Shown piece after piece: positions 6,520 to 42,038 of a stretch of DNA of 64,000 nucleotides. Each line of letters opens with the position of its first letter. Positions within the stretch are counted from its first letter, which is position 1. The DNA comes from Entomortierella parvispora E1425. Lineage: Eukaryota; Fungi; Mortierellomycota. Below the pieces are notes generated by a model. It did no database searches, was not told the DNA's origin, and saw nothing but the letters and a program-made list of their open reading frames with translations. The stretch covers positions 992,001 to 1,056,000 of the forward strand of contig BQFW01000004.1 in the NCBI GenBank assembly GCA_020891255.1, in the 5' to 3' direction. The position numbers and the translations under genes were made by a program.

Positions 6520-7713
6520 CTAGTCGTGGAGGTATTCTTCAAGAGTAGGAGGAGATAGTCCGAACTTGCCTACTGATGCATTCTTTTGAGTGATGCATGA
6601 ATGTAAATTGGCAAATAATACAGATATGGTGTACTGAACATGAAGAGCTGAAAGTAAACTGCGTTGAGTTTTCTTGAGTTCAGTGAAGGAGAAGTATTGG
6701 AGAGTGTGGCCAAAACTCCATTCAACCGCAATTCTGACTTCTGCCATCGCTTTGTTGAAAGCCCTTTGCCCAGCCGTCAGCTCGTTGTCTCTTCCTGGAA
6801 AGGCGACTTGCAAGACAGGTGATAGCTCATATCCTTGATCACCAAAAATGCACATGTTGTTTCCAGCAACATCTTTCACTCTTTCTAACAGAGTATCTTG
6901 TAGCCGTGATATCCTGTACATTGCTGTGTCATGTTGTTTTCCATGGTACGGCCCTGAGAGATGAACAACGATGCCATCTGGGGTTGTCACTGCTTGAAAC
7001 TTCATGGCATGAACCCTGTGATGACCATTGTACTCTTGTCTTTGATTTTCCATTGGTCTAGCAATGGGCCGTACTGTACCATCAATAAATCCTACTACGT
7101 CTTGAAGTGGTGATCCTGCTTCGCGAATGACAGCAGCGAACTGCTCAAGCTTGGCAGGTGTGAGTCGTGCATGGTCCCAAGTGAAGAGTTGCCGCGCCCA
7201 ACGATTGTAGATCCATGTAATAGTTTTGTTGAAGATACGACTGAGCATGCCTTCTGATCGTCCAAACATGGGCATGAGGTCAACCAGTCGACAAGGGAAA
7301 GCAAGGCGGCGGAGAACAATGCATACTCCTTCGAGGGAAGAGAACTTTGATCCATTATCCAACACCAACACGTTTGGTACACGAAGTGCTTCAACGATAT
7401 CGAGGATCTCATCCGTCCTGAAGCGAAAGAGGCGCTCGCTTGTAATGTTGTCGTACTGGTTGAGGTTGAAAATAGCGAAGGGTACTGGTGGGTTCCTATT
7501 TCTTCTTTGGAGGATTCGGGCAGCATGTTGAATGAAATCGTTGGCCATCCCCATTAAAAAGACTATTTCTTCATCGCTGTCTGACTGGCGGTCAAGATTG
7601 TTGGCGTCCTCATTTTCGTTGTCAATATCTTCATCGTCGTCTTCTTCGTTGTCTTCTTCATCGTTGTCTTCGTCATAAGGAAAGATACGCGGTATTTGTT
7701 CTTGGTCGTCCAT
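6520..7713 (-). CDS. Harbinger/HARBI1-type DDE transposase (DDE_Tnp_4 family), 397 aa, uninterrupted
   Basis: LFRFRTDEILDIVEAL, RRLAFPCRLVDLMPMFGRS (HTH), GFIDGT, YNGHHRVHAMKFQAVTTPDG, GPYHGKQHD, FGDQGY, RIAVEWSFG catalytic motifs. Confidence 0.95.
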   Translation of the reverse strand: MDDQEQIPRIFPYDEDNDEEDNEEDDDEDIDNENEDANNLDRQSDSDEEIVFLMGMANDFIQHAARILQRRNRNPPVPFAIFNLNQYDNITSERLFRFRTDEILDIVEALRVPNVLVLDNGSKFSSLEGVCIVLRRLAFPCRLVDLMPMFGRSEGMLSRIFNKTITWIYNRWARQLFTWDHARLTPAKLEQFAAVIREAGSPLQDVVGFIDGTVRPIARPMENQRQEYNGHHRVHAMKFQAVTTPDGIVVHLSGPYHGKQHDTAMYRISRLQDTLLERVKDVAGNNMCIFGDQGYELSPVLQVAFPGRDNELTAGQRAFNKAMAEVRIAVEWSFGHTLQYFSFTELKKTQRSLLSALHVQYTISVLFANLHSCITQKNASVGKFGLSPPTLEEYLHD

Positions 7714-16520: not shown

Positions 16521-19500
16521 ATGCCCTCCACCGTCGATAAAGACTTCAGTCTATCTCTCAGTGTTGCTCGCCTACTCTCCTTGGATGGAAGACCTCGCCT
16601 TGAGAGTTCAGTCGTAAGGATGGTGAATGATATTCTAGCCGTCAATTCGACACGACCTCTCGAGCGCGTCAACTCCGCTTCAGTCCCTGCCTCGGAGCGC
16701 GCCAACTCCGCCTCGATCCCTGCCTCGGAGCGCGCGAATTCGCCTCCCCAAAGGCCGAGCTCGCCTCCTCAAAGGCAGAGCTCTCTTTCTCAAAGAAGTA
16801 GTGCATCACCCCAAAGGCGGAGTTCGTCTCCTGCCGCCGCCCACCGTATCGGCTCGTCCTCGCATCACTCCTTGGGGACAGCCGCCAAACGACCAGACCT
16901 TGGAAGCTTGAACGAGGGCCCAACATCTCAAAATCAAGGCATCAAGTCTCCCTCGTGGTCGATTTCTTCGAACGAGGCGCTTTTCTCTGATGACGACGAC
17001 TGGCAAGTTATTAGCCAAGAGAAAGGTGTGATCGTCATCAGCGATGACTCCAGGTAAGTCTGATGAAAACTCTGCTACGCTAGCTGATCATTTTTTCGCT
17101 GCCCTTTATTCTTATTCTATTCATCCTTTCCACTGCTTGATAAGTGATGATGACGGCCAAGGGTAAGTCGTAAAATGCAAGGCCAGACTTCAGAAACGTT
17201 TCTGACTTGTGTTTGCACATCCACTATACTATATATTTGCATTGATGTAGCTCTATGCCTCCTAGAGTCAGCTATGCTGACGCTTTGAAGCGGTCCACAG
17301 TACTTGCATCTCGGTAAGGGTTAGCTGTGGAACGACGAGTTTGTACAATAGAACTGACCTTTAATGCTGGCTCCAACATTTTCTGTCCTTTTCTCTATTG
17401 CTTGCTCTCACCGTTACCCTGACCACAGCCCAGCATCCTTGTTCCCAAATGACTCTAATGTCAGTTCATCTGGCAATCAAGGAAAGGCGATTTCAGTCGC
17501 CACTGAAGCTGCGCCTTGTACTGAGTAAGTAAAAGCAGCAGGTAAAGTTGTAATAGATAATGGGATCTTGGACCTGACTCCCTGTCTCTTCCCTTTTTTT
17601 TTTTTTTTTTTTTCTTGTCTTTTAGTGCAGTGTCCAACTCTTTTCCCTCCAACGTGGGTGGCTATTCGAATGAGCTTCAGGATCAACGTTGGGTTGACGT
17701 GCGTGTTATCCCCGGTCCCCCCAGTGAATCTGTTATCCCTGGCGCTGTCAAAGTCGTCGCGCCCAGTGCCAGCTCTAAGCCTGATGTGATCAGTGCCGAC
17801 ACTACTCTCGGCGTCTCTACAAAGCGTGATAAGCCTGGCGTCAAAACATCAGGGTAAGAATTACGGGGAGGAAATCGTGCTGTGGTAGCACAATGAGACT
17901 CACAACTCGTTCTATTCGATTTCAGGGCTACACATCGTTCATCTTCACTCGGATTGGCGCAGGTCATCTCTCGCACCCGCGAAAGAGGTGCTATTCTTGT
18001 TCCTGATGTACATTCTAGGAATAGGAGTGGGTATGTTGCTGTGCCCATGTGCTGTTTTATTAAGATCAACGCTACATGCAAGGAGGGACAAAAATTTACA
18101 GGAGTTTTTTTTTTCTTTTGAAAACGTTAGACTTAGTATGTTTTACCCGCCGACATTGACACAGACCAGTCCCTACACTCGAGGAGAAGATGTATCTTCT
18201 GAAGATGGGCCTCGATCTAGGTATGTTAGTATACGTTTCTTTCCATGATGCTATCCGACGAATTGATCTTCAAATGTCGGTCTCTAAGTTTTTTTTTGAC
18301 CGCAGCCCTCTACACGAATCTTCGGATGAGTTCCCCAACGGTGATGTGCATCTGATACGACTACTTTCAGATTACAGTTCACTTCAATTGGCTCGCAGCG
18401 TTGGATGGGCAACGAAGGTCACCAGCCAATACACACTGAGAACTTCCGGGAAAGTTATCCGCAAGCGCTGTCTCGGTGTGAGCCGATGCCCTCTCCCTTA
18501 CTGCCCTTATGTACGCCGACCAAAAGTCTCGGCGGCTGCTGAAAATACCACCTTCTCCTCAAGTCAACTATCACAGGAGCTGGAAGACGATGATGCCATT
18601 TGTCGTGTACACCAGTTACCACTAGAACCCACTGGCTGTAGTGCAACGATGGATTTGGTTCAGGCAGGAGTAGACCGCATTGAGCTCATCCACCGTGGGT
18701 TCCATGAGCATCCTAAACCGTTGCCCGCGCGTGCAAGTATGGTTGCTCTAAACGATCTTGAAACGATGGTCAACACAGCCCCAGAGGCGAAACCTAAACA
18801 TCTCGTGATCGGAACCGCGACAAGACCTTCAATTTCTATCAAGCATCCGGTTCTCCACAATCTCGGCTATACGAGATACCTGCGATTGCGTTCCCTCAAC
18901 CATGGGAAGACAACCGATAACCTTGGCGAGCTCGCAAATCTGGAATCCAAACTGGGATTCCATTTCCTTCAATCTCACAGTTTGGAAGCAAAGGCTGGTC
19001 ACATTTGTGTGCAGACTGAATTTCTGCGTCAGCGTTGCCGTGGCCCTCTGACCCACATGCAGACAGACTCTTTCCACGGAGCGGTGTTTGAGATCCATAT
19101 CAAAGACGCGAACATCACATGCACAGTTGCCTACTGCGCCTTCGCCGCAAAGGTCATCCCAATTGTTATATCCGTCTTGTTTGGCAAATCCGCGGAGCAC
19201 TACAAACGCCATTTTTCAGTCGTGCTACAGTCTCTTGAGTACAAGTCTTGGGAGGAGTTTGATGATAACTTCCCTGGTATGACCTGCGACTTCTCTGATG
19301 CCGAGCGAAAGGGATTCCAAGCCGCAATCGCCGAACACTACAATGTCAGCGTTGATATTGTTTCACTTGAAGGGCATTACCAGTTTTGCACTGTTCATTA
19401 CCGGCGGTCTTTACGACGCGTGTGTAGGGAAGCCTCTGTTATCCCTGCGGCAAGATCAGATGAATTTTATTTCATTGCTGAGAGTCTCACTCGGGAAGGT

Positions 19501-21454
19501 ATGACTCTAGTCGAGTTTGAAGAGTCTGTTGCATACCTTCTTGAACAATTCCCTCGAGCCCGCAATTGGATCGCCTGGTACATGAATGCCGATCGGAAAA
19601 GCCTTATTTATCCGGCACTGAGGGGGCACCCCCACGTTCTGGAGACATTAGCTTTGGACACGAATGCTCAAGAAGGCTTTGGGGCTCATCTTCGTAACTA
19701 TCTCGAGCGGACAGCGCCCAGAGGCGGTATTGTCAAATGTGTTGAGGCCATTGCACTTTATCAGCAGTCATTCGCCCGAGACTACGACCACGTCCTTCGA
19801 GGCGGAAAACTGACTTATGGCAAGCGACCACCGGTTCCAGAATCTTATATCAATGATGGACGCGCTCCAGATAACGCGAAAGCATTGAGGGCAGCGCAGG
19901 TTAAAGATGAAGCTCGACGTAAACGGGAGTCTGCGCGTTATAAACCCAAGGTGCCCAAAGACTTACTCCAGAAGCCGAAGCAAGGGCGTCGCCTAGGCAG
20001 CCAAAATAAGGCGCCTTCATCGAGGGAAATATTTGACCACAACACGTTCGGCATTCCCTGGGGTGTGGAGCCTTCAAAACTGTCAGGCAATGCACGGTTT
20101 GCGCTCACCAACACCTGCGCCCTCGATTCCTCTCTGATGGCGTGGTACATGTTGGTGTCACTTTCTGGAGCGACGCTCCCCCCCGCTATGATTTCTTCAA
20201 CTGTAGGCTTGGCTCTTCTGTCAGTAATGGCCCACCTCCACGCAAGGCGATATGACATGGCTAGGCGCCTCTGGTGCACAGACGTGATGAAGCTACCTGG
20301 AAATAGACATCACGACCTCTATCTAAGTCTTGAGGCGGTCTTCCTTGATCTAGTGCCAGGCCTGACAAGGTTCGAAGTGTCCAGGGTATCCTCGTGCAGT
20401 GTACCCGGGTGTCCTCAAGAAGTCAATCATGCCGCCCCACGGTCTGTCATCATGCTTTCTCCCGACATCATTACACAGAAAACATTTAATGAAGCACTGT
20501 CGGCATCATTCCCGCACAGTTGTACCAAAAGGGTTGCTGGATTCAACATCACGGGCCACAGTCGGCAAGAGTGGACGATCACCGACGAGGGCGAGGAGTC
20601 CTGGACTGCATGCTCAGGGCAGAGATCTCAAGGCCCGATGCTGGTCGCAGAATATCCGCCTGTCCTGCTTTTTGGACTGTGTCCAAGAATACAGGAGCAG
20701 TCAACACCGGGGGCCGTGGATCATGCCTGTTTCCGTCTTGAGATTTGATGCCGAGATCTACCACTTGGCAACGATTTTCTACTTCAACAACAATCACTTT
20801 TGTTGTGCTGTCATCGTTGGTAACAGCGTGTACCTCTATGATGGCAAGCCCTTATACCCGCGGACGAGGCTGATTAATCTTTCGCTTTTGAAGGATTTTT
20901 GCCAACCCGAAGGGTACCGACCGATCCTTTTCTGGTATTTGCATCAACAGACAACCTCGCTGGATACGACAGATATGGACCCTAAGACCAGCAGCAAAAA
21001 TGATCAAAACTACACTATGACCGCCGCCGTTTCTCCCACTGTGGCTCAAAGCCCTGTGCCCGTAGCGCTGGTGCCGTCTCAGCCGCAGTCTGGTGTCGCG
21101 TCGCCAACGCGCTCCTCTGATGTTGGCAAAGAAACAAAAAAACGAGAGTTTCCTTCCATCACAGATCAAGAAGCTGCCAGTAATTCGATTGTTCTTCGGA
21201 GAAGCAAACGGACTAAGCACCCTATTGGATTCAGTTATGGAGAGATTGCTTCGAACGGCCCGCTTCCTATCTGCCAGTCTTGTGGGAAAAAAATAGAGCG
21301 AGATAGCAAGAGGTTTCTGCTAACAACACTGGAGGACGATGTGAAAAAATGGCGTAACACCAAGTCTTACCACTTCACAAGAGAGTGCATGAGGGCAATG
21401 CCCTCCAAGTATCATCATTCAGCCGAGGTTGCTCTGGAGCAGAATGGGGCATAA
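16521..21454 (+). CDS. MULE transposase: low-complexity N-terminus, GCM DNA-binding domain, DDE core, USP-like Cys protease, PARP-like Zn finger. 8 exons; +1 frameshift near 20669-20713 (1191 aa as written, about 1426 aa if corrected)
   Basis: Exons 16521-17053, 17145-17162, 17251-17313, 17429-17524, 17626-17853, 17926-18030, 18131-18220, 18306-end splice in frame. GCM-like GWA...KRCLGVSRC...RRP...C..H...C...HRGFHEHPKP; D 19066 (QTDSF), D 19288 (TCDFS), CTVH 19387-19398, E 19672 (TNAQEG); NTCALDS 20110; NHF 20792; YDG 20837. Confidence 0.85.
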
Positions 21455-22168: not shown

Positions 22169-25100
22169 TTACCAGAAGGCACAGTATCCGATCCAACACT
22201 GACAGAGGTTCTCAGTCGAGGTGGCCTGCTGAATCAGTTTCTCAACCTGAGATTGAACATCCAGACTCTTGTCCGGGGTGAAATCACGTCCTGTCAACTT
22301 GTTGGTCACCCTGTTCAAGACCGTGATGGCCCTCTGGTTCAAGGGCTCGGCTGGATTCTGTTGACTGTCCGAGGTAGAGAGTCCCTCCAAGGAATCCGTT
22401 ACCGTCGAATGGTGACCATTGACTGGAACAGCCAAATTGTTTTTGGCGCCTCCTGCGGCAGTTTTGGTAGTAGCCCCTGCCGCTGTTGCTGTTGCTGTTG
22501 CCGCCGCCGTCGCCGCCGCCGCCGTCGCTTTTTTCAATTTCTGATTCTTTTCCTTTTCAATCAATTCTTGTTCACTTGGCACGATGGGCCGTCTCAAACT
22601 CCGAGCCAGACTCAGTCCTTCCTGCTCTCCTTGGAGTGCGGTGTTCGCAGTGGTCGTCGCCACAGCCTTACGGCCGCCAGCAGCGCCACCGCCAGCAGCA
22701 GCAGCCGTTCCAGTGGCGCCTGCCGCCTGCTGTGAGGCTTGTGTGGACTGCTGTGGCTGTTGAGGGCTAGTATGCAGGATCCTCCAGTTAATCAACGGAT
22801 CATGGACAAAGGCCTCCAAAACGGCCATAACCGACTCCTTGTTCTCCCGCAACACTCTCATGACCGACTCACTCGTCTTCCTGAACGACCCCTCATATCC
22901 GCTGACCTCCATCGCCAAGACCAACATTCGCGTCAATCGGAAGGGAATCCGTTCAGGGAACTGCGCTCGATGCATCGCCACCTCAAAGCAGTCGCCGAAA
23001 TCAATATGGACGATCCGTCCCGTGTTGCGATCCATCATAATGTTGGACGGGTGACGATCGCCCAAGCCCAGGATGTGGCCCACCATCGACATGACCGCCA
23101 AGGACCGCGTATAGGTCGTCCTGCGTTCTAACCACACTTCAGAGTTCTTGGACTTTAGCCAAAGAATCTTGTAGAGGTCTTCGCCCGAGGTCTTGCTCAG
23201 CATGTGCTCAAAGATTTCAACCTTCTGCATCACTGTCAACAGATCAAAGCCGCGATCGGCTGGAGGTGGCGCCATCTGGGTCAAGAGCTGATGCTCTGTC
23301 TTCAAAGAGAGGCCGCGACTATCGCGGTAGCCCTTGATCAAGTTGTGAAGGGTGTCCGTATCCTTGACCCATCCAATCAATCCCGAGTTTGGAGACAGCG
23401 GCGTCACAGAGTATTGCTGAATCGACAAATGGCGCTTGAACGTCTCAGGATCGGCCGCCAGCAGCGTGTTCACCAATCCAAACAACTGCATCACTCTTTC
23501 ATCCTGTCGCAGATCCTCATGACCCTTGAGCAAGAACTCATGTTCCCGACCATCGCTGCCCAGGATGCTCAGTCGACGGGGGTGTTGTTTCGAGGACAAG
23601 ATGGACATGGTGGGGACAAAGGATGTGATTCTGACAATCGGCTCGCCACTCTTGTACGTTCCTGGAATCGCTAGATCCAGATCCCGGACGCCTTGAAGCT
23701 GAGGCGAGACATAGGGCAGGTCCAGAGTCTCGAGGGCCGGAATCTTTCGAATCTTCTCAAAGACATGCATGTAAATGCTCCAGGCATTGTTGAGTTCATT
23801 ACCATCGCGTGTTTGTCTGTACCGAACACAGCAATCAAACGCTTCCTTCAGCTCCCGTCCGAATGTCTTGACAAACACGACCTCACTCATTGTCTCTGGC
23901 CGCTATTATAAGAACAAGTAACAGAAAGAGAATGCGTATCAGTAACAAACGAGCAAACATAAAAGGATATGACCAAAAAAAAAAGAAAAAAAGACGCACC
24001 TTCATAATCATCCGATGCAACGGGTCCAAGATAGCAAACATGGTGTCGATGTTTCTGTTGCCTTGAGCGCTGTGGTTATACACATCTTGCAGTCCCTCCT
24101 CCCACATCTCATGCCAAAGAATCGCCACGCGGACCAGCTCACTGCTGACCAGCAACGCTTGGTTGACCAGAACAGGACTGTGGACCATCATGCTCTCAAT
24201 AATGGCCACCGCAGCATTCTTTCGGAACACGCTCGGAGATTTCGAAGCCACGGCGAGAGAGTATACCAAGGCCTGAGGGTGGGCTTGTCCAACATCCGAG
24301 AGCAGCTTGTGGATCAGCCGATGCACATTCTGACTGGGCGCATGGATCCTGGCAATCAATTGAGGAATCACTTGAAGCCAGGTATCGATCGATACCGTCG
24401 GGAACCCTTGGCTGAGTGTCGCACTGACATCAGCCCGGTGACCAAACTTGAACCAGAGTGTCAAGAGTCGAAGCGTGTCTTGAAGCGAGTTTCCGGCAGA
24501 GAGCGCAATGGATCGGAAGAACCCTTCGATCGAGGGGAAAACGTGTCTCAAAACTTGCTCTGCCGTTCCCGAGGCCGCGTTTTGTTCATAGTACGAGATC
24601 ACTTCGAAATTGGCTAGGGCCCATGTATGCCAGGCCTTGTACCAATGTTTGTCCAGTCGAGTTGCATACTGATAGTGGGTCAAGATACTTTCAACAGACT
24701 CCTACAAAACACAGTGTTTTTTTTTGTCAAGTTTGAGTATAGCCACTCCGATATGCAACAAAAAGAAGTAAATAGAATGAATGAACAAAATATCTTACCG
24801 GTGTCCACTCCTCTTGAATGGCAAATTGCCACTCTCCTTGCTTGAGGTAACAACGGGCCAGCAGTCGGGCAAAATCATCTTCCGTGCCTCCGCCCTTATG
24901 AAGACCTGTCAGTGTGTCGCCCTTTCCTGGTGAAAGAGCCGCACCGTTCCTCAAATCTGTCGCGAGTCGATCAGTGAATTCATGAAGACAGCTTAGCGTT
25001 TGTGCCCGGACTCCTGTCGCCCACATGTACTTGAGTTTAGCATACACGACCTGCGGTGGCGTCACAAGAACTAGATTCGTAAACTTCATCTCCACAGTAT

Positions 25101-28100
25101 CCTGTCCGATTAGCGCAACCATAGCTTGCTCCGCCAGCCGTAGGCGACCCGACTTTCGACAGAGGTTCATAAACTTGATCCGAACCACCATGTCCTCGGC
25201 CGGTGTCAAAGCCAGCGCATGGACCTTGATGGTCTTTTGCCAAATCTCCACGTTTCTCTCACAGCCCAGGAGGCGTTTCATCCAGGTTCGTCGAATGGTG
25301 GCCTGTCTCTCTGGCTGCTGAGCGTATTTCTTGTACGCAATAACCTCCTCTAGCTCCGCCATCATCTGAACCCGGACCACGGTTTCGTACGCTCGACTGT
25401 AACTCTCGCTCACCAACGCCGTCATCTCGGTATCCAGCGAGCTTCGAGTTTGCTCAATGCACTCCTTTGCTTGGTCGAATTGCTCCCGTCGCAGGTACAA
25501 GATGGCGCGGAAGAAGGCCTTGTTCGAGGTGTTGTCCTTCATCACCGAGACATATTCACTCAGCAGGTCCCACTGACCAAGGCCCCAAGCTGCCGCAGCC
25601 ACATAGGATGCCATTTTACTCCTGATATTGGCTGAGGCGTGACTCCATTTCTCCTGGGCCAAGGTCGAAAGAGCCTCCCATTCTCCCAGGGCATGAAGAC
25701 ATCGCATCCGTCCGACTGTCAACCACAGATCCTGCGGGTGTTCCAGCTGTTTCCGCTCATAAGCCGCCAAGGCATCTCCCCATCTTTGGAGACGCTCGTA
25801 CCAATACTCCTTGAGTTCAATGGTGTGATGACTCTGAGCATAGGTCAAGATACCAGCTGCCGCATCCGGCTGTTGCAAGTCATCGTTGATCACGATCAAA
25901 GATTCAATGGCCTCCTTGGAGCGATCCTTCATAAACTCCAGCTCTTTGTAGTGAAGTGCCTTGGCATAGGCGTGGCAAGTCATGGCGTATTTGCCCAGTG
26001 TCCTGATCTCGATCGGCAGTGGCTTGTCGTCGTGCTCCATATACTCCGCTACGTTCAAGATGGTCTGGATAATTTCAGGAGATACGTTGGGTGCCACAAC
26101 CGCTGTCCTTAAAGCCTCTGCAAACTCAGCCTACAAGTTCGTAAAATATCAAAAAGCATATGAGTACCGTCGGCAACAAAACCATAATGGTTTCCATAGC
26201 AATCATCGACAATCCTCCTTAATTTCATCGCTAAGCATACCTGGAACTGCTCGGTGAGCGAGGTCCAACAGGACATGAAGGCTGCGTTAAAGAGTTCTCT
26301 TGCCAGGGGTTGAAACGAATTCGCCATTTCGGCACAGGCTCTCAGTGAATGTGAAGGCGTTCCTTTGAGTAGCTCCAGACGGAGTCGTCGGATCCAGTCC
26401 ATCCAGTCGTCCTCTGTAGACCGGGACTGGGTATTCCAGGCTCTTCGCAGAGCCATGGGATTGACGGGCAGCTTTCGGTTGTCGGATTCAGCTTGAGGGA
26501 CATCAGTCGTCAGCACATATCGATCATCGCCCGTTCCAGTCAGTTCTGAAGGTGAAGGGAGGGGATCCTTGTTCATCAGTTTTGTCATGACCAATTCATA
26601 GTTCTTATGAACAATATTCTCTCTTGTCAACACCTAGTAAAATAAAGATATGGTTCGGTCAGGACATTGGATCAGACCATTATAGTCAAATGCGCATGTG
26701 TCTTGGCTTCGCTGGTTACCTTTCGAACGAGCGGAGCAAAGTTCAAATAATTTTGTCCAAGTTGAATCACCATCAAGCAGAGCACATCCATTGTCGCCGT
26801 TCTCAACTCTGGGATAGATAACGCCAGAATTCTGGACAACGCATGCGTAATCCTGGAAGCGTGGTCCGACAGGTCGACTCTCCTCGATAAAGCACCAATC
26901 GTACTAATGGCCGCCCGTCGCAAATTCAAAGGTGCCTCTGGTCGCTCAAAAGTCTTGACCAGCAGTGGAATAATCATGTGCATATACTCCTCGATATTCG
27001 TGCCGAGCTTCACAAGGGCCTGCAAGACCCTGAATGAGGCATTGCCGTGGTGATGATGGGGTTGCTGACGTGGTTGCTGCTGTCTTTCCGAGGACAGATC
27101 TGCTTCCAGAATTGCCATCATGGATCGAAGGAATTTGGGCATGTAGGATTTATACTCTCCATCCAAACAGAGTGCAATGCTCTCGATCAGTCCAATGATA
27201 CGCTCCTGCACGCGGGTATGAGTCCAGTTATCCTGCACTAGCTGGAGGAGCTCGGGTATATAAGGTCGAATATGTTCTTTGACAATCGCCACTAAAAAGC
27301 TCATGTTTTCAAAGTAAAAATCCAGATTCAACAATGTTCCAGATTGCATGATGTTCACGTAAACAGGCATGATCTATATTGTTGTGAAATCGGACCTAGT
27401 TAATTACACATTTTTGACATGTCGCCCATTTTCACATGGTTCAGAGCGAGGGAGGCGTCTTACCTGAGGGAGGAAAGGGACCATCTTCAATCTGAGGGCC
27501 TGGAAGATGTTCAAGATGGCCTGGGTCGCAGGTTGGTACTGTTGGCTGAGGGATGGGTCCTTTAGAATCTTTAACAGGGCAGTAATAACAACGGTGGGAT
27601 AGTACTCATCCGAGGATGGGTCGACTCCATTCATCAGCAGGATCACATCCGTATTGTCCGATTTGTCGCTTTGGTTGGGGTCGCCTGATTCAATCACCAT
27701 TTGCTATTTGAATGGACAAATTGGACAAGTCAGCAAAAACCGTTTCAAGTAAACAAAAAAGAAAAATAGAGATCAAATCCTAGCAAATCTCCAGTTAGCG
27801 GACATTACCTTGTGACGATAAGGATCAAGAGCACCAAGAACTCCAATTAGCTTCATAGTCTCCTGTCGAATTCGGACTGATTGCTCCGATTTCAGAATAA
27901 ACACCAGGATATCCAGAAGAATAGGGTATTTGAGATAGGGATCAATGACATATCCCGTGTTGCTTGCCAGCCTTCCTAAAGCCGTCAGAGCCGCGCTTCG
28001 TTTCATAGAAGAACTCTGGTCCTGCAGAATCTCGATGAAGTTGGGCATCAGCTGGTCCATGTAGGGCAGCATGGCCTCGCCGCCCACCTGTGCTAATTCT

Positions 28101-31100
28101 CCGAAAGCCTGAAGAACACTGGAGACTACCCCAGGACTGCTGTCCTTAATGTTGGGCAAAAGAACCTTGAAAATTCTGTCGATATAGGGCTTGATCATTG
28201 ACTCTGAAGCAACGATCAACAGTGTCAAGAGCCTGGCACTTTCTTCCTTGTTTCTTCCCATTCCAGAGTATTCAATCTCGGTCAAGAGCTGGATAAGAAG
28301 CTTCCGCAGCGATGGAACCACATAGGCCGGGTTGTGCACAGTGAGTCTGCCAATGATCGAGATGGCCATCTCACGAATCACAAAGGTCTCGTCGTTCAAG
28401 GCGAAGAATAAAGATCGCACATGCTCTGCCTTGGCGAGGTGTCTGTCAAATCTCTCATCCAGTGAAGTCAAGATGGCTTGACGAATAGTCGGGTCCGGAT
28501 CAGCTGTGACGACCAACAAGAGCCGCTCCAAGACTTCTCCCACCACCTGAACTGCATGGGTGCTGGTCTGAAAGACGATGGGATCCCTGGCAAAGAGCCT
28601 ACAGCATGTAAGAGCAGCTGCGCGTCTAACACCCGAATTGTTGTGGTCCAGATAGCCGATACAGCTGTCCCTAACAAATTCATTCAAAACGTGTCCGTTG
28701 AAGTTGAATGACCCAAGGGTTCTCAGCGCCAGAATGAGTGCGTCCGTGTCCCGATCACCAAGGACCGGTGTGGGCATCTTTTTCGGCAACGGAGCCCCTG
28801 GTTCCCTGTACAGTTGGCCACTTAGAATAATCGAGATGATATTGAGGAGTCGTTCTGTGATATTTGAACACCATGAAGAGAAGAGTGTTAGCCATATAGT
28901 GGCCACGTACAAGCAACAATAATCACCAAAACAAAACGTCCATAATTACCTTGAACACCGGCCAGAAGGTCTGGGATCTGAACAGACAATATTGCAAGAG
29001 ACTGACACATTTCCTGACTTAAACCTGTCATGAGCATCAAGTCCAGCAGTTCTGACATGTGAGGTGACAACGTTGGTCCAACAGCCTTTGCCAACATGCT
29101 AATGCAGTTGAAGATCGGAATATCTGCCACAGCGCGGTTTTTGCTACAAAAATAGTAAGAATGAGATTTAGTTACAGAGGCATTGTCAATCTAGGAACCT
29201 CCTATTGTGATGCAGTCCCAGATTTACCTCTTGGCTCGTAAACCATCCTTGATGCACTGCATGACGTCGTTCAAAAACGGGTCCATGTCATGTTGCGCCA
29301 CCAAGGCAATTTTTCCAATGGCCAAGAACGCCATGGCTCGATCTGTCTCATTGACTGGTTTGCGTTCCTTGTCCATATATAGCTGGCCGATAAGGTGTAG
29401 CATGGATCGACGAAGATAGAAATTAATGAATGCCGTGGGGTTGTAGGCTGCAAGTTCGGGAATAAGATTGATAATTGTCCTCCGCACGAGTGAATCCCGA
29501 TGGTCCTTGAGCTGCAGCACAATATGGCATGTATTCATGAATCTTTCATCCATGAACTAGGGGTTTCACAGTAATATTATAACATGTCAGCGCTTTGTTC
29601 GGTAGTGAGCCCTTTAAGCGCGGACGAAAACTGGATCCCAAATCCATGAAGCTTACCATTCCACCATGAAGTAAGAGCTCCTTGATGATCAGGAGCGATC
29701 CATGAATACTCTCCACAGAGCCTATCCGGAGACCTCTTTGTGCTTCCTCATCTATCCTGCTGTACCAATCCGCCTTTTCTGAAGAGTCGCGATCTGTGAT
29801 GAGGACAAGGAGAGCGCTAAGAGTATCCGCAGCTGCCTCGCGAATGATTTGCTATTGGACAATTGGACGATGTAGTTAGATATTTTCCGTCATCCCTTGG
29901 ACTTCAAGTCGATTGTTAACGCTTGTCCGATCCATTAGAGTTCATACTTTTTGTTCGCGAAATGTTCCCCAGATGTGCTCCAGAATCGTCCCAACATAAG
30001 AATAGACAATGACGCTAGCATGCCTTGCAAGTTCCGCCAATACGAGCACACTAGCATGTCGCCTTGCTTCCTGTCGGTCACCTAGAGTTATCCGTGATCA
30101 CACAGAGTCCTGGTGAGTACACATGTCCCATCTTTTTTGATTTCTCTCCGCTGAAGGATATCACTCGAACAGCACCCCTTTGTACCTGCAAGTCGTTCTA
30201 TAGCTCGTTTGACTTCGAACTCGACAAACTCAGTCGTGAATGTGCCTCCCTGCTGCGCCAGTTTTCCTACGGTCCCAAAAATAAAAGCCATATCAGCCAT
30301 CCAGCCTTGTCTCGTGTCAGCAGTCATCTTTAGTGTCAAGGCAGTGTCTTCATACCAAGCGCTCTTGCAGCCACCGTCATCGTGGGCACATCGGAAGGTA
30401 GCAGTTGGCGTAGGAAGTTGGCAAAGCGGGTATCCAGGGCCGTGTTGTCGTCCTCGATTCCAATCAAGTTATCTATAGATCACAAGGTTTGAGGTCGAAT
30501 TCGGTCAAAAAAAGAAAGCATATGACAAGTGTCGTGAGTGTCAACAATTTTTGTCAACAGCAGCGTCGAAAGAGCAAACGTGGGCGTCTATCTTTGGGCG
30601 TCTGTTGGGACACACGATCTGATTCCTCATGGCCGATCGCTATTATTTCTTTTTGGCGCGTTTTTTTTGATACCTATGATAAGGACTCCGCAGAGCTTGT
30701 CGTCGCTGTCGGCACTCTGCACCAGGACGCGCAAGACGTTTGTGATTTCATCGTAGAACTTTGCCAGATCTTGTCCTGAAAGCTCTCTTGAGGTCAGTGT
30801 GACCTGCATAGACAAAAAAAGAAAATCGTATCCAGTCAGTCATTCAGTCATTCAGTTTGGTCTGCAGAACTGCTCCCAAGGGCGAGGGATTGTCGGCATA
30901 TCTCCTTACGTATCCTTTAAGCGCTTCGGCACTGATGTCTCTCGCCTTGTCATTGTGAAGACTAGATTGTACAAAGAGGAATCAAAACAAGGAGGCACGG
31001 GTGAGCGACCGGGCTGTCAAAGGTGGTTGAAGGTGCGTGAAGCAAAGCGAAACGGCTTCCTCGCTTCTTTCCACAGTACCTGGCTTTCAGGTCGTTGGTG

Positions 31101-31543: not shown

Positions 31544-32215
31544 TGATACTTCATTTCATTCTTTTTTTTTTTTTTTTTCTTTTTTTTTTTTTTCGGGTCG
31601 TGTTGAAGCTAGCTGTGCTGGCGTGTTTCATTTCGTAGCGGTCGTTGTCATCGTTACAACAGGCCCCCAGGCACCGTCTTCTCTCGCTCCACCGCGATCT
31701 GCACCTTCTTTTCTCCGCGCACAACATTCCTCCATCCGAGGGTCGCCTTTTTCGTGTTGCTCGTCCAGGCAGTTGGAAAACTCAAAAATTACAAGTATTT
31801 TTATACGCTCGCTGACTGGTGCAACTTCAAGTTTCTCGACGGTCAAAGGGGGAAATCGTTTTCACGCAGCAAGGGACGGAAGGAGCGAGGAGATATTGGC
31901 TTTGAGAAAAGAGTCCCATGGGCCGTTTACATACAAAAGGCACCCGTGCGCTTCCTCTCTTTCTCTTTTTTTTCTTCATCCTGTGCTCGTTTTTGTTTTC
32001 TCTCTTTTCTCTCTCTGTCGGTTGTTCTCTTCTTGTCCTCATATACCCTCCTCCGCCTTTGTATACCAATCACACCCCCTTCCTTTGCCCATCCTCGACA
32101 GTACAGACCACCTCCCGCGCAAAAAAAAAAAAAAAGAACAAACGAAATCATCAAACAACTTTCACTCTCCACACACAAACACTTCTCGCGCAAATCTCGT
32201 CAAAGCACTATACAC

Positions 32216-33847
32216 ATGTCTACATCCAAGGATATCTTTGACCTCGAAAAGCAGGAATACCAGCTTGTCGATCACCCCATCCAACGCCTTTCCCTTCAAC
32301 AACAGCACCAGCAATTGGAGCAACCACAACCACAGCAGCAGCAACAGCAACAGCACCAGCAGCTCCCTCTTCACGCCCACCTCGAACCAGAGGATGTTCG
32401 TGTCTCCCCCTTCCACATGGACGTCAATATGAACCCACCTTTGAACGCCGTCATCCAATCCGCGGTCCCTCCGCCAAACCCCGGTCCCTTTGGTCTCTGC
32501 GCTTTCGCGTTGACGGCTTTCTGCATGGGTCTTTACAACCTTCGGGCAGGTGTGGGAGCGAATGCACCGGGCAACATTATTACGGGAACAGCCATGTTCT
32601 ATGGTGGTCTTGGTCAGGTAATGACGCTTTTTTTTCTGTCTCTCTTTTTTGCCTTTCTATTTTTTTTCTCCCAACAACTCAACTCGGTCCTTGAAGGAGA
32701 GAACTGGGGCGAAGTAGGGAAAGCCCTGCCAATTGGTTTCTCTGGTTTGCAATTTTTGTTTGTTTGTTTTGTTTTTATGATGTCCGCTCCTGTCGTTCAA
32801 AGGGGTGGATCCTTCCTCCTCTTCGATGATTTGTGATTCGATCGACAGCACAGAAGCCTTGTATTTTTTTTTTCTGGACACGGAGCAAGTAAAGTTCCCC
32901 GCAAATTGCCCATCATTTTTGTGGGCAACGTATTCCTCCCCTCCTTCTTTCTCCCCTTCCTTCCCCTGTTACTGGCCCTGCACGCCTTTGCCTGCTTTCT
33001 TGGACTGTATCCAGCCTAGTTCCTTTCTTAACCTACCTTTCATCTTCCGCTCCCATTTCTTCCGAGGTCACGCTCTCACGTCTCACGGACAAGCCCTGCC
33101 ATTGATCCACCCCCCGCTTCATTTAACATCTTAGCCCCATTTTTTTTTCGTCTTCATACTTTCGGGCACGGTTGTCCTTTTTTTCTATTTGGCAGGGGGT
33201 TCGGACACAAAAATGATCACCAGCAAAAAAAAAAAGTCAAAAACGAACGACGCGCAGACCTCAGCCCATGGTGCACGGTCCTAGCAATCACAACACGCGT
33301 CAACCTACTCTTGCTAACCCAACGATCCTTCCCCCCCCCCCCTTTTTTTTTTCTTCTACTACTCTTTTCATTTCTCCCACTCCCTCCACCCCCTGATTAG
33401 GTCATTGCTGGTCTGCTCGAGTACCGCAACGGAAACACGTTCGGAGGCACAACCTTTTGCTCTTATGGTCTCTACTGGATCTCGTACGCCACTCTGTTGA
33501 TCCCTTCCTTTGGCGTCGCTGCTGCCTATGCTGATTTCCCCGAGGATTACATGACTGCTGTCGGCACCTATCTCTTGGGCTGGACCATCTTCACCTTCTT
33601 GATGTGGACCCTGACCTGGAAATCCAACCTCGCTTCCTCAGCCCTGTTCTTTTGTCTCGGACTGACCTATCTCTTCAGCACCATCTCCAGTCTGGCTCAT
33701 TTGGAACCTGGTAACATTGTTCAAAAAGTCGGAGGCGCCACCGGTGTCCTCACCTCTTCGATTGCCTGGTACTGTGCTTTGGCTGATCTCAGTCATGCCC
33801 AAAACTCGTTCTATACCTTGCCTCTCGGTCAATTGGGTCGCAGATAG
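32216..33847 (+). CDS. Gpr1/Fun34/YaaH (Ady2/SatP-like) acetate/ammonia transporter; one 783-nt intron (32618-33400)
   Basis: NPGPFGLCAFALT signature (family NPAPLGL), MFYGGLGQ|VIAGLLEYRNGNTFGGTTFCSYGLYW, six hydrophobic helices, poly-Q N-terminus. Confidence 0.92.
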
Positions 33848-34144
33848 ATGCAAAAAAAAAAGACTTTTTTTTCTAGACACTTTCCTCAGGAATGAAAGAA
33901 AGCAATCATACCTTAAACTTCTCCATCCAGCATATTGCATCCTCTCCGCCTGTCCATCGCCTTTACAGCGGGTACCAACCCATTTTCCTTCCATATACCA
34001 CGTTGCCTTATCTTAATAAAAAAAAAAGGGTCTACACTTTTAATGTCGTGTGCGATGAACGAGTATCTGTCTATGTACGAGGTGTCTATATGGGTAAGGT
34101 ATCTTTTTCTGATTCTTGTTCTACTTTCCCCCCCTTCAACGTTT

Positions 34145-36600
34145 TTAGTTCTTGGTAAGACCCAAGTTCTTGCGGTTCAATCCCGCCAATTGGCTTCCAA
34201 TCATCCTCCGGCGCTTGCCCTCCAAATACAACATCGACTCGGCATAGGTCCTGGGCATGATTCTAGGCGTACCCTTGACGGGGTCTGTAAAAGTGAACCA
34301 GAAGGTGTTTGTGGTCTCCCTCGTTCCCTTCTTGACATCCAACACATCAGCCTTGACCATCACTTGGAATGAATGGTGGTCTCCTCCTTCAGCAAACACA
34401 ATCTGGGAATCCAGGGCCAAGAACGTGCCAATGGGCACAGGCTTGCGGAACGAAATCTCATCCAGAGCCAAAAATGTGGGGCGGGAAGAGATAAAGACCG
34501 AGGCATTGCAGAACGCAAGCTCGTAGGCCAGACGCATCAAGTAACCTCCGAAAATCTAACATGGGAAAGCAACGGGGGCAATTAGATCGAGTTGCATGGA
34601 AAATGTTAGGAGAGAAGGAAAAAGAGTCTCACCTTGTCGTGGATGTTACGATCCTGAGGTTGCATGATGGTGATCGAGCTCTGCTTGGTGTCTGCCATCC
34701 ACTCGACATCATCGGGCTTCTTGACCTTCAGGTGAGGGTCATCATATTTGGAGTACTCAAGATACAAGTCGTGGATCAAGAAACGCTCCTCCTGAGTGGG
34801 TGGTCGCTTGGTCAGGGCAGAGTCGGTAGCCACACGCTTCTTGGCCTTGTGATCTAAGGATGATATAGTAATATGTGTTGGCAAAACAAGCTGCAGCACC
34901 ATAAGCAGCAGTCTGTCAGAGCGTTTTTTTGCAAATTACCTTCACCCATCTGGAACAGTTTCTTCTCAGTATCATTTTGGAGAAGCATGGGGTTAACTTG
35001 GGCAGCCTTGCCAGTGATGGCATCTCTGGCGACCATAGTGAAGCGGGCCACCAAGATGGTGTCTCCGTGCTGTCCTGGCTTATCCTCAGAGATTTCCTCC
35101 ATCTTCATGAAAACTAAAGGTGTCAACAGGAGAAACAGGAGAAAAGAAGTTAGCTATACACACCTAATCAAGACCTACATCCTTTCCTTCAATAGTCCCT
35201 GCACATACTCTCCATGGATGAGTATCCGACATAGGTGACATGCCCCGAGAGTCGCAGATCAGTCACTCCCAAAGGCTTGAGAAGGTCAATTCGATCCACA
35301 GAGGCTGTGACAATGGTCAGAGGTGTGCTGTCGGCCTTGCCGTCGTCCGCATGCTTGTACGAGATGGCTCCAGCAAGAGCATCCAAGTCCTCCATGATCT
35401 TGCCATGTCTATCGAAGGAAGAGAAAGACGTTAGGCCTCTATCGTCTAGACCTGTAGTAGATCAAGATGGGCAAAGAAGGAGTTCCTATTGAGACAATAC
35501 CTGAGAGACCCACCGACGTTGATGTACTCTTCCAAGAGCGCCTTGTCGGTTTTGAAGGGCAAAATGATTTCGGTATAAGAATCCTGCATCGTCTTCAAAA
35601 CCAGAGCACGCTTCTGGTAGGTCTTTGGTGGTGCCTCAGCAGGTGGAGGAGTGGAGGCGTTAGCTCCCGTGGGCGCTCCATGTTGACTTGCCAGTTTGTC
35701 GATCCAGGAGGTGATGGGGCGAACGGTGAAAACTTTGCCGTGGGGCAGAGCCGAGTTGATCTCGGCAGCGGCGGCGGCGGCAGCAGTGATAGAGGAGGTG
35801 GAGGTGGACCAAGGGCCTAGAGCAGAGAGTAGAAAGTAGCGGGTTAGAGGCAATGTAGGCAATGTAGTGGGTATGTCAGGGATAACTGATCTGTCGGGTC
35901 TTCGGCTGCGTGTTTTGTTTTTGCTCAAGTCGCCCTGGTGTCGACCGATCCACCATTGGCAGTCGAGAGCGGTCTTGGGCGAGGCGCGGAATCCCTTTTG
36001 GAGAAAAAGAGATTCTAAAGCGAAGACATTTTTTTTTTTTTTCATTTTCAATTGCGACTGAATAAACTGCAAGCGGAGGATGAATCACCCAGGTTTGTCT
36101 CTTGTCTTTTGCAGCTTTTCTTCTCACAGTGCTGTTTGCTCGCTGATCTTGGTTAGTACGCTTCCTTTTTTCTTCTTTACTCTGACGCAAAGTAGACCCG
36201 AGTGCATGCGCAAAGAGAAGAGAAAGCGCGGGCTCGGGCACTTCTTTGTGTTGTCATCATCCTGTCGTGTTGTATCACCATCCGCCTGCATGTGGCCGAT
36301 CAGAGCACTCCTCAACGTGCAAAACATGGAAGAAAAAAGAAACAGAGAGAAAGTAGTACCTGCAGTGGCTACAATCTTGCCAGCAGAGTTACTGCCGAGC
36401 TTGTCGAGAAGTTCATTCCTGGTCTTCTCCAATGCCTCTTTGGAGGCAAGCGCCTGGCTCGTCTTCTGGGTAGCAGTCTGATCGCGCGCGTTCTTGCCGA
36501 CACCGCTGGTGAAGAGCTGGGGGTTCTGTGTGTTGAGGCTGCGCTTGGTCAAAGTGCGGGAGGCGAGGTTGACCAGCGATGATCTCGGTTGAATATTCAT
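34145..36600 (-). CDS. Double hot-dog acyl-CoA thioesterase (ACOT9-like, probably mitochondrial), multi-exon
   Basis: MQDSYTEIILPF, EDLDALAGAISYKH, IVTASVDRIDLL, SGHVTYVGYSSME, QPQDRNIHDKIFGGYLMRLAYELA, LDEISFRKPVPIG. 5' exon assignment (ATG 36600) is less certain. Confidence 0.88.
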
Positions 36601-39141: not shown

Positions 39142-42038
39142 TTACAGGGGACCAGATCCTTTGGTTCGAATGCGATCGCCGACATGGACCACATAAGGCG
39201 CCACGGACAAATCGGGACGATGCAACATGTGCATGCCAAAGAAAATTTGTCCGCTAGGGGCTTTTCGATTTTTAGAAAGGGCCAAGAAGACATCCGAGTT
39301 CTTCATGGCCGTCTTTTGGTCAATGGTGACCATATGGCACCGACGGCAAGGTCCCAGGATATCAAAGACTTGTTCTCCAATTTGGATCCTCGTCCAATGG
39401 TCTTCCTCGAAGGACAGGGCGGGGTCTCCACCCTGGGTCACAAAGTTGGCTCGGAAAGAATCCGACGTCATCTCGTGGCGGGCCGAGGCAGGAAGATCCA
39501 ACGAGCTGTTGGCCAAACGACGGACCGCTCCCTGACCCTCATCATGTTCATCGATCCAGTCACGGACCCGCGACACAGACTTGTCCGAGATCAACAGGAA
39601 CGGACTTTCGTTCGAGAGCAAGATCGGCGCACCCTCAGGCGCGTTCAAATGAGATTTAACAAACCGCGACGAAGGTGTGTTGGTCGGCGTGGCAGATCCG
39701 ACTGACGGCTCCGTCACGGGCTGCCTTGCCAGTCTACAAGGCTTGCCCAAGAACCGAGAGAACCATTCATTGATCTGAGGCGATGTATAGTGAACCACCG
39801 TCGTGCAGTCTCCACAGACTCTGGACGAGCTCTTTGCTGCCTCTGTTGGCATCTCGTCCAGCGAGATGTACAGCCGACGATCCGCAGCAGTGGAAGCAGA
39901 GGCCTGGGTTTGGACGTGCTCTTTCTGCATCTCTTCTTGATCGTGCTCGACTATCATCAGATTCTGATCCAGCAAGATCTCGGCACGGATCATACACATT
40001 CTAGGGAATCGTTTCTGAGTCAAGGCTGCACCGGTAATTTCGTCCACCAACATCCATTCACGGTCATAGAGCAGTCCATGGGGCGCAATCGGCCATGCTT
40101 TGCCCCGGGGAATCTTGTAACCTCGGCAGGATTTGATGGGGTAAATAACCACAGAATCAACGTGGACAGGAGGAAGAGTCGATTGTTCGGCCTCAATGCT
40201 TTCGCCAATGAGATCCATGCTCTCGACGATTGCATCGGGATCACTGTGGTCGATAAAGTATTCCTCCAAAAAGGAGACAAAGAAGAGGACATCATCCACC
40301 GAGGACATGGCACCTAATGATACTCGAATAGAACCCGTTGGTTTACCATTCAGGATATCTGTGTCGTCCCAGCAGACGTGACCGGCCTATTTGGGGTTTA
40401 AAACGAATCATTTAGTATACCGATATCACACATGTTATTCAAGGCGTCAGTCGTGAAAATGCGCCCACTCACCTCCAAGTTCTTCTTCACTTCATCAGCA
40501 GAGAGATCAAGCCAGCGCTGCATAGATCCAGGGTTGCAGAACCCACCAGTGCGGACATGAATATTCTTCATGCTCGCCAGTCGCTCCACATCGCCGTATC
40601 CGATCCACTGACCGTTACTTCGTTTCAAGTTGAAGTTCAGGATAGGTCCATACTGCCCAGGGGTGTCCATATCGCTGTCCTGGTCAACATAGATCTCACA
40701 GACTGGGGTCTGGTTATAGTGCTTCAGATCCTTCATGGAGCGGTACAAGAGTCGATGAAGTGCAGAAACATGGGGTCCAATCTTGTCGTAGCCCCCGTAA
40801 ATCTCGCGCATCGAATCAAACGCAAGGTCCAGGGCAACAATGTCCAAAAAGTTCAAAGTGCCATCTTCGAATCGCCCGTGCAGCTCGGTTCTGTACACTT
40901 GCCAGGCCTCATCTGAAGCGATAGCCGAGACAGTGCCTCCGCCAAAGTACCGATCTTTGCGGAGCTTGTCTGCTAATTCTGTCTTGACAATGACGGCACC
41001 CAGACCCGTTGGGAAACCAAACATCTTGTAAAACGAGATAACAACAAAGTCGGGGCTGGTCTCCAGATCACTAAGATCCAGGTCCGAAGAGGTCATAACA
41101 TAGGAGGCGGCATCAAGGAGGACGAGCGTCTTGGAGTCTTGGGTATCGAGACGGTCCTTGATTTGGCGTGGCCAGGAAAGGGGGAAACGACGACCACCAA
41201 AGTTGCATTGCGCTGGGTAGGCAAAGAGGTTGTACACAACGTCGTTGTCTGCCTGGTCAGACGTCTTTGAGAGGGTGGTGGAAGCATCAAATGTCTCCAT
41301 AAGGTTCGAGGTGGATCCGCTAGGCGACGGTGGCGGTGAGGGGTGGTGCGAGCGAGCTTCGTTTCTGGCACAGCCCATTGGGAAGCTGATCGAGTTGATT
41401 AAAGGAGAGGACTTGCTCGACAAGAGTTGCTGGACCTGATGTTCATGGACTGTTTCCACGTCGATACAGGGGCCATTCTCATCTTGGGCCATACCTCGGA
41501 GTCCGACTAAACTTGTGTGAGCCTCCCGGAGAATCGTGAGCCTACTTCTCCGAGTGGATCTTGACGATACAAGATCAGACTGACGAGTCCAGGGAAAGGC
41601 ATCCCCGACCAGCTTGATGCCGGCAGTAGCGTTTGCAGTAAAAATGACGTCCCATTCACCATGGGTCGAAGCCTTGAAGTGCTCGAGGACTTTTTGCCGA
41701 GCAGAGTCCACTCTGGCTGAGGTTGCTTGAGAAGAAGGAGATTTGGAATGGGGGTTGGCATAGAGGTTTGAGGTGAGGTCGGAGGTGAACCGTTTGATGT
41801 GAAGCTGTGAGGGCAAGGTGGCACCGGCATGATCCAGGTAGACAGCATCTACAATATTAAGGCGAAACAGGTGTCACTATAGATCGACACAAGAGTAGGA
41901 GATGCAATGAAGAGGACAAGAATGAGGTATACCGTTGAGCTGAGGGTATTGTTCTCGTCGGATGTCATCAATAGAGGTGTTATAGCCAAGGGCGTCTTGG
42001 CTGTTAAGGAACAAGGCCTTTGCCGTGGAGGTGGTCAT
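39142..42038 (-). CDS. MOCOS: Molybdenum cofactor sulfurase (NifS-like PLP domain plus MOSC domain; hxB/ABA3/MOCOS)
   Basis: VYLDHAGATL, FTANATAGIKLVG, SFYKMFGFPTGLGA, RFEDGTLNF, HVRTGGFCNPG...AGHVCWDD, IYPIKSC, LLYDREWM, FRANF, GPCRRCHMV. Confidence 0.95.

Follow-up and report, generated by a model that had tools for sequence, protein, structure and literature searches.

The window analysed here, a 64,000-nucleotide stretch of the genome of Entomortierella parvispora E1425, carries on its minus strand a full-length TOR gene. We call this diverged TOR copy TOR-D. The gene and its parts are listed below with the evidence by which each was recognized.

22169-31000, minus strand: multi-exon TOR-D gene, encoding a full-length TOR/mTOR-family kinase (minus-strand ORF segments, Pfam, reference alignment)
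27776-28945, minus strand: mTOR_dom, plus HEAT families (Pfam, mTOR_dom E 2.6e-24)
24802-25608, minus strand: main part of the FAT domain (Pfam, E 1.1e-81)
24000-24140, minus strand: first half of the FRB domain, helices 1-2 (Pfam FRB_dom positions 1-44, HMMER, MAFFT)
24078-24080, minus strand: codon TAT, encoding Tyr at the position of human S2035, yeast Tor1 S1972 and yeast Tor2 S1975 (sequence, HMMER alignment to human mTOR)
23903-23999, minus strand: 97-nt GT-AG intron of phase 0 inside the FRB domain (sequence)
23744-23902, minus strand: second half of the FRB domain (Pfam FRB_dom positions 48-99)
22778-23539, minus strand: PI3/PI4-kinase catalytic domain, PI3_PI4_kinase (Pfam, E 1.4e-77; alignment with human mTOR)
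22373-22750, minus strand: low-complexity insert rich in Ala, Thr, Gln and Gly, between the kinase core and FATC (translation)
22172-22264, minus strand: FATC domain with the terminal residues CWIGYCAFW (Pfam, E 3.7e-15)

The stop codon of TOR-D occupies 22169-22171 and its 5′ end lies near 30,900-31,020, with N-terminal exons that match those of a syntenic relative, L030, as far as position ~30,963. Over 2353 residues the locus aligns to a Cavenderia TOR of 2366 aa (P0254). Every hallmark of the TOR family is found: mTOR_dom and HEAT families, FAT, an FRB insertion in the kinase N-lobe, the kinase motifs and FATC. A first-pass annotation of this DNA had described the kinase motifs as intact, and residue-by-residue alignment with human mTOR bears this out. 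The kinase Lys, the DRH..N catalytic loop and DFG are identical, and a 20-residue catalytic stretch and the motif HIDFGD both reproduce the human sequence. Judged from these motifs, TOR-D looks catalytically intact. The low-complexity insert varies in length and sequence even among the closest relatives, and it is the main reason why identity between the window and metagenome contig L013 falls from 98% over the first 310 residues to 89% over the whole of exon B.

An intron divides the FRB domain; each half was analysed on its own, with only counts pooled. Both halves exceed the Pfam cut-off for FRB_dom (40.6 and 58.7 bits vs 24.7). The minus-strand translation of 24001-24683 terminates in a 22-residue FRB motif, and the first half presents V/Y/N/H/S/A and an inserted Q opposite human A2034-F2039. 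The translation of 22172-23902 starts with RPETMSEV and includes a 13-residue motif of the second half. HMMER alignment to solved human mTOR chains places Tyr at S2035 together with a one-residue insertion, and equates N38 with T2098, W41 with W2101, S42 with D2102, M45 with Y2105 and F48 with F2108. When less diverged relatives are included, MAFFT puts the insertion after position 2039, which yields Y2038S, F2039A and the extra Q. In the second half W2101 and F2108 are retained, D2102, Y2105 and R2109 are replaced by S, M and E, and one residue is deleted directly after the last FRB helix. Taken together, the two alignments bear out the five groove substitutions claimed in the first-pass annotation (S2035Y at 24078-24080, Y2038S, F2039A, D2102S and Y2105M) and its one-residue insertion, and the retention of W2101 and F2108 that it also reported is seen in the alignment to human mTOR.

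These residues can be set against an anchored window scan over 143 TOR cluster representatives from across the eukaryotes. Of these, 119 have Ser at position 2035, 11 have Ala and 13 have some other residue, and W2101 is retained in all but two (141/143). The same scan removes one item from the list of peculiarities, since T2098N, which had been presented as one, brings in the commonest residue at that position (Asn in 59/143), a residue that the second TOR of this genome carries as well. TORs that depart from Ser at 2035 exist in very diverse lineages. One sequence from an unrelated lineage, a 228-aa product of a Logan contig (P0141), reads EESYKLCF and so has Tyr at 2035; two others, also from unrelated lineages (P0198 and P0199), read EEACRLYF, with Cys at this position. 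The best matches to TOR-D in the representative search are distant, at 66% for Piptocephalis and 52% overall for Cavenderia. An assembly error as the source of the Tyr was considered and rejected: the independent metagenome contig L013 has the same TAT codon and an identical FRB protein, at a synonymous divergence from the window of ~0.5.

The published contacts of the FKBP12-rapamycin complex are W2027, L2031, S2035, Y2038, F2039, T2098, W2101, D2102, Y2105 and F2108. At S2035, even the change to Thr blocks binding on its own and confers resistance beside wild-type mTOR; the yeast alleles TOR1-1 and TOR2-1 are S1972R and S1975I, respectively. The statement in the first-pass annotation that bulky substitutions at this serine abolish binding is thus in keeping with published genetics. 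Of the features of a binding-competent FRB, the window's copy lacks Ser or Ala at 2035, the Y2038/F2039 pair, D2102 and Y2105, and it has W2101 and F2108, which are themselves among the residues whose mutation yields resistance. Since five of the ten contact residues are altered, and a residue is inserted in addition, we predict with high confidence that the FRB of TOR-D does not bind FKBP12-rapamycin.

A six-frame search of the fungus's own genome (38.9 Mb, 20 contigs) reveals a second full-length TOR on contig 11 (~723980-733000, minus strand; loci L029 and L010). Both TORs align along the whole length of the 2366-aa reference. The kinase exon of the contig 11 copy is 71% identical to that of the window, and its FRB, which scores higher against Pfam, is canonical at every contact position (EEASRLYF, AWDIYYQVF). 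The paralog count that the first-pass annotation had proposed as a check therefore stands at two loci, with a canonical FRB in the contig 11 copy only. Of the two readings offered there, the diverged second paralog is the correct one for the window's copy. The FRB of the contig 11 gene is interrupted by an intron at the same point as that of TOR-D; the common intron position implies that the duplication was DNA-based.

The genome contains one locus each for Raptor_N, RICTOR_N and Sin1/CRIM. Its 1043-aa Raptor exon matches the NCBI protein of E. parvispora with 100% identity, ahead of other Mortierellaceae at 79-84%. The genome also has the following FKBP12-like genes.

C13:794969-795331, plus strand: FKBP12-like gene of at least two exons (genome search)
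C1:2559590-2559948, plus strand: FKBP12-like gene of at least two exons (genome search)

The rapamycin receptor is thus duplicated alongside its duplicated target. The proteins encoded by these genes deviate from human FKBP12 at some positions. The best FKBP match in the genome, L017, was rejected as FKBP12, as it is an ER-type FKBP ending in RDEL.

What is predicted to ignore rapamycin is this TOR copy, and not necessarily the whole fungus. Intrinsic resistance of the organism is not established, with a canonical TOR and two FKBP12-like genes present. The canonical copy alone leaves such resistance unrefuted, however, because resistant TOR alleles act beside a wild-type copy. Our literature search found no rapamycin growth data for Mortierellaceae, and a search pairing Mortierella-family names with "FRB domain" found only a mere species listing.

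Relatives of TOR-D were collected as exon-sized ORFs from metagenomes, Logan contigs and public assemblies, in a search spanning proteins of 0.55-1.75 times the query length. Nine related exon sequences share the insertion and the loss of Y2038 and F2039. Common to all TOR-D relatives are the motif WHEMW[E/K]EGL, an NAQG segment with the one-residue insertion, and the one-residue deletion after the last FRB helix. Position 2035 is Y in the window and L013, I in L032, R in P0243, L in L030 and L033, and S in L015 and L016; the R and I found here are the resistance residues of yeast TOR1-1 and TOR2-1. Elsewhere in the groove, position 2105 is M, F or L and position 2108 is F, A or Y, such that F2108 is mostly kept. 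W2101 is invariant and L2031 is kept, and the loss of D2102 belongs to the window's subclade. In one Logan contig (ERR12035940; P0002, with P0243 as its upstream exon) Arg at 2035 is joined by the loss of F2108 (SIYMNVAGK), and by its residues this groove is the most degraded of the clade.

The canonical copies, namely that of contig 11 together with L031, P0125, P0131 and P0132, have a textbook FRB. A maximum-likelihood tree of the exon-A region, built with IQ-TREE from these five canonical rows and ten TOR-D rows among other eukaryote TORs, recovers the canonical clade (93/94) as sister to the TOR-D clade (100/97*) within a joint starred clade (99/99*). This sister relationship indicates that the duplication was specific to the Mortierella-family lineage, and the topology places it before at least three TOR-D sublineages separated. 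The stem of the TOR-D clade is longer than that of the canonical clade (0.25 vs 0.16).

Genes upstream of TOR-D (window 32,166-35,063) match those of the L030 metagenome contig in order and orientation, which identifies these two TOR-D loci as positional orthologs. Members of the Gpr1_Fun34_YaaH family are among the upstream genes on the L030 contig. Unlike the upstream side, the downstream side is not conserved between the window and the TOR-D loci of relatives. Just downstream of TOR-D, at 18190-20748 on the plus strand of the window, lies an ATG-initiated ORF of 852 aa without a Pfam match.

By Nei-Gojobori counts, made exon by exon, TOR-D is a working gene, with an omega of ~0.01-0.03 over synonymous distances of 0.4-1.5. 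For the FRB, the window and L013 differ with a pN of 0.008 vs a pS of 0.49, L015 and L016 have no nonsynonymous changes at a pS of 0.44, and the window and L032 give an omega of ~0.04; in close TOR-D pairs generally, FRB omega is ~0.01-0.04. The alignment and dN/dS analysis across the clade suggested in the first-pass annotation thus bring out both a shared insertion with loss of Y2038 and F2039 and strong purifying selection in close pairs. Relative to its flanks, the FRB has 1.9-fold the nonsynonymous divergence between paralogs and 1.06-1.44-fold between TOR-D sublineages. These values suggest that the FRB changed rapidly once the gene had been duplicated and then came under constraint, except at a few groove positions and above all at 2035. 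The codons at this position are TCC and TCT (Ser), TTG and CTG (Leu), TAT (Tyr) and ATC (Ile), a set consistent with Ser having been replaced independently several times. The five states of the five close lineages, four of them bulky, are compatible with diversifying selection, in which a drug could be the agent, and equally with relaxed constraint at this site. The strong present constraint on the new FRB suggests that the groove still binds something.

The FRB face does more than receive a drug. In mTORC1 it is a secondary substrate-docking site for S6K1, 4E-BP and PRAS40, and in TORC2 it is masked by the C-terminus of Rictor/Avo3. In the account that we consider likely, TOR-D is a lineage-specific TOR duplicate whose rebuilt FRB groove does not bind rapamycin, and a division of labour between the two copies is proposed, with modest confidence, as the cause. 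A DNA-level duplication within the Mortierella-family lineage produced the canonical TOR of contig 11 and TOR-D. The latter has kept all TOR domains and catalytic residues and evolves under strong purifying selection, while its hydrophobic FRB groove, at once the FKBP12-rapamycin site and, in TORC1, the docking site for substrates such as S6K1 and PRAS40, has been rebuilt.

The assignment of tasks can be proposed with modest confidence. The canonical copy may keep both TORC1 docking and the drug site, and TOR-D may work in a setting that makes no canonical use of the groove. This would most likely be TORC2, in which the site lies beneath Rictor/Avo3; alternatively, TOR-D may have changed its docking partner. 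Drug insensitivity would then be a by-product and, again with modest confidence, at most an added benefit, and tolerance of the whole fungus would hinge on whether TOR-D also serves in TORC1. Division of labour is the most economical account because the oldest shared changes alter the docking groove rather than the one serine that would suffice for resistance. The changes far exceed the needs of drug resistance, which speaks no less strongly for an altered function. However, S. pombe Tor1 and S. cerevisiae Tor2 serve in TORC2 with canonical FRB residues, and service in TORC2 alone therefore does not force divergence.

Several known systems resemble TOR-D in part. As in TOR1-1 (S1972R), TOR2-1 (S1975I) and mammalian mTOR S2035T/I, the same FRB serine has given way to a larger residue. 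Each of those alleles is one induced substitution in an FRB that is canonical in other respects, whereas TOR-D is a natural, fixed paralog whose losses extend to Y2038, F2039 and Y2105, and in the window's subclade to D2102, and which has both an insertion and a deletion. The presence of two full-length TORs beside a single Raptor and a single Rictor, following an independent lineage-specific duplication, recalls S. cerevisiae Tor1/Tor2, S. pombe Tor1/Tor2, Batrachochytrium dendrobatidis, Pleurotus ostreatus and Phanerochaete chrysosporium. Unlike TOR-D, both FRBs of those fungal duplicates keep S2035, W2101, F2108 and the phosphatidic-acid residues. Kinetoplastids offer another parallel, as their TOR1-4 include extra paralogs that have specialised roles and no longer have, or never had, an FKBP-rapamycin site. 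These protists are unrelated and have four paralogs, of which TOR4 has no FRB, whereas the FRB fold of TOR-D persists under constraint, with its groove rebuilt. Finally, TORC2 masked by Rictor/Avo3 shares with TOR-D, as predicted here, a TOR activity out of reach of FKBP12-rapamycin; in the masked complex a partner conceals an FRB of canonical sequence, whereas in TOR-D the site itself is changed.

It is also possible, though we regard it as unlikely, that TOR-D is a drug-resistant TORC1 kinase retained owing to rapamycin-like macrolides of soil actinomycetes, in which case the fungus should grow on rapamycin and position 2035 should be under diversifying or positive selection. No FRB site in the clade varies more than position 2035 (Y, I, R, L and S across five lineages), two of the residues found there are those of yeast resistance alleles, a resistant TOR functions alongside a wild-type copy, and Mortierellaceae are soil fungi. 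However, a single change of the serine would be enough for resistance, whereas the oldest shared changes, the loss of Y2038 and F2039 and the insertion, alter the substrate-docking groove; one TOR-D subclade (L015, L016) retains Ser; and the literature search mentioned above found no rapamycin data for the family. Should this improbable account hold, Mortierellaceae would possess a rapamycin-proof, TORC1-capable paralog that confers dominant tolerance to macrolides of soil actinomycetes, and the repeated replacement of the serine by Y, I, R and L would reflect a chemical arms race still under way at one residue.

A new function for TOR-D, in which the rebuilt groove would dock another substrate or another regulator, within a new complex or one like TORC1, and would not simply be hidden in TORC2, likewise seems improbable to us. 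The tight conservation of the diverged FRB within sublineages (omega ~0.01-0.04) would be expected if this were so, as would the persistence of a hydrophobic groove through W2101, L2031 and, mostly, F2108, and the kinetoplastid paralogs illustrate that extra TORs can acquire new roles. Conversely, the genome has no duplicated partner genes, with Raptor, Rictor and Sin1 all in single copy.

We think it very unlikely that the FRB of TOR-D still binds FKBP12-rapamycin, perhaps by way of the fungus's own FKBP12. The retention of W2101 and F2108, two resistance-associated residues, and the deviations of the genome's FKBP12-like proteins from the human protein leave some room for this; yet even the conservative S2035T blocks binding, and TOR-D has Tyr at this position in addition to the loss of Y2038, F2039, D2102 and Y2105. 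Despite the longer stem of its clade in the exon-A tree, the probability that TOR-D is a decaying duplicate heading for loss is close to nil, given a full-length gene with no frame breaks in the exons examined, intact catalytic motifs, an omega of ~0.01-0.03 and retention in at least four diverged lineages; a pseudogene was rejected on the dN/dS results.

The rebuilt FRB in one of two TOR copies bears on several expectations about this kinase. Surveys report the FRB serine and its aromatic neighbours as conserved in every fungus examined, all known fungal TOR duplicates among them; TOR-D represents a natural fungal TOR clade that breaks this rule, some of whose members carry the yeast resistance residues. 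As of 2010, zygomycete lineages were the only group without a known two-TOR species, and these former "zygomycete" lineages now gain such a case. With its groove rebuilt and then frozen by selection, TOR-D also offers a natural experiment on the role of that groove. In Mortierella-family fungi, rapamycin may be an unreliable probe of TOR. These fungi serve in lipid production and in research on plant association and endobacterial symbiosis.

Beyond the TOR-D locus, two further features of the window were observed. On the minus strand at 6520-7713, a 397-aa ORF has a DDE_Tnp_4 transposase domain of the Harbinger/PIF type (E 1.7e-24). At 39142-41816, also on the minus strand, two adjacent ORFs match Aminotran_5 and MOSC_N plus MOSC, respectively, and together resemble a molybdenum-cofactor sulfurase gene that an intron divides.
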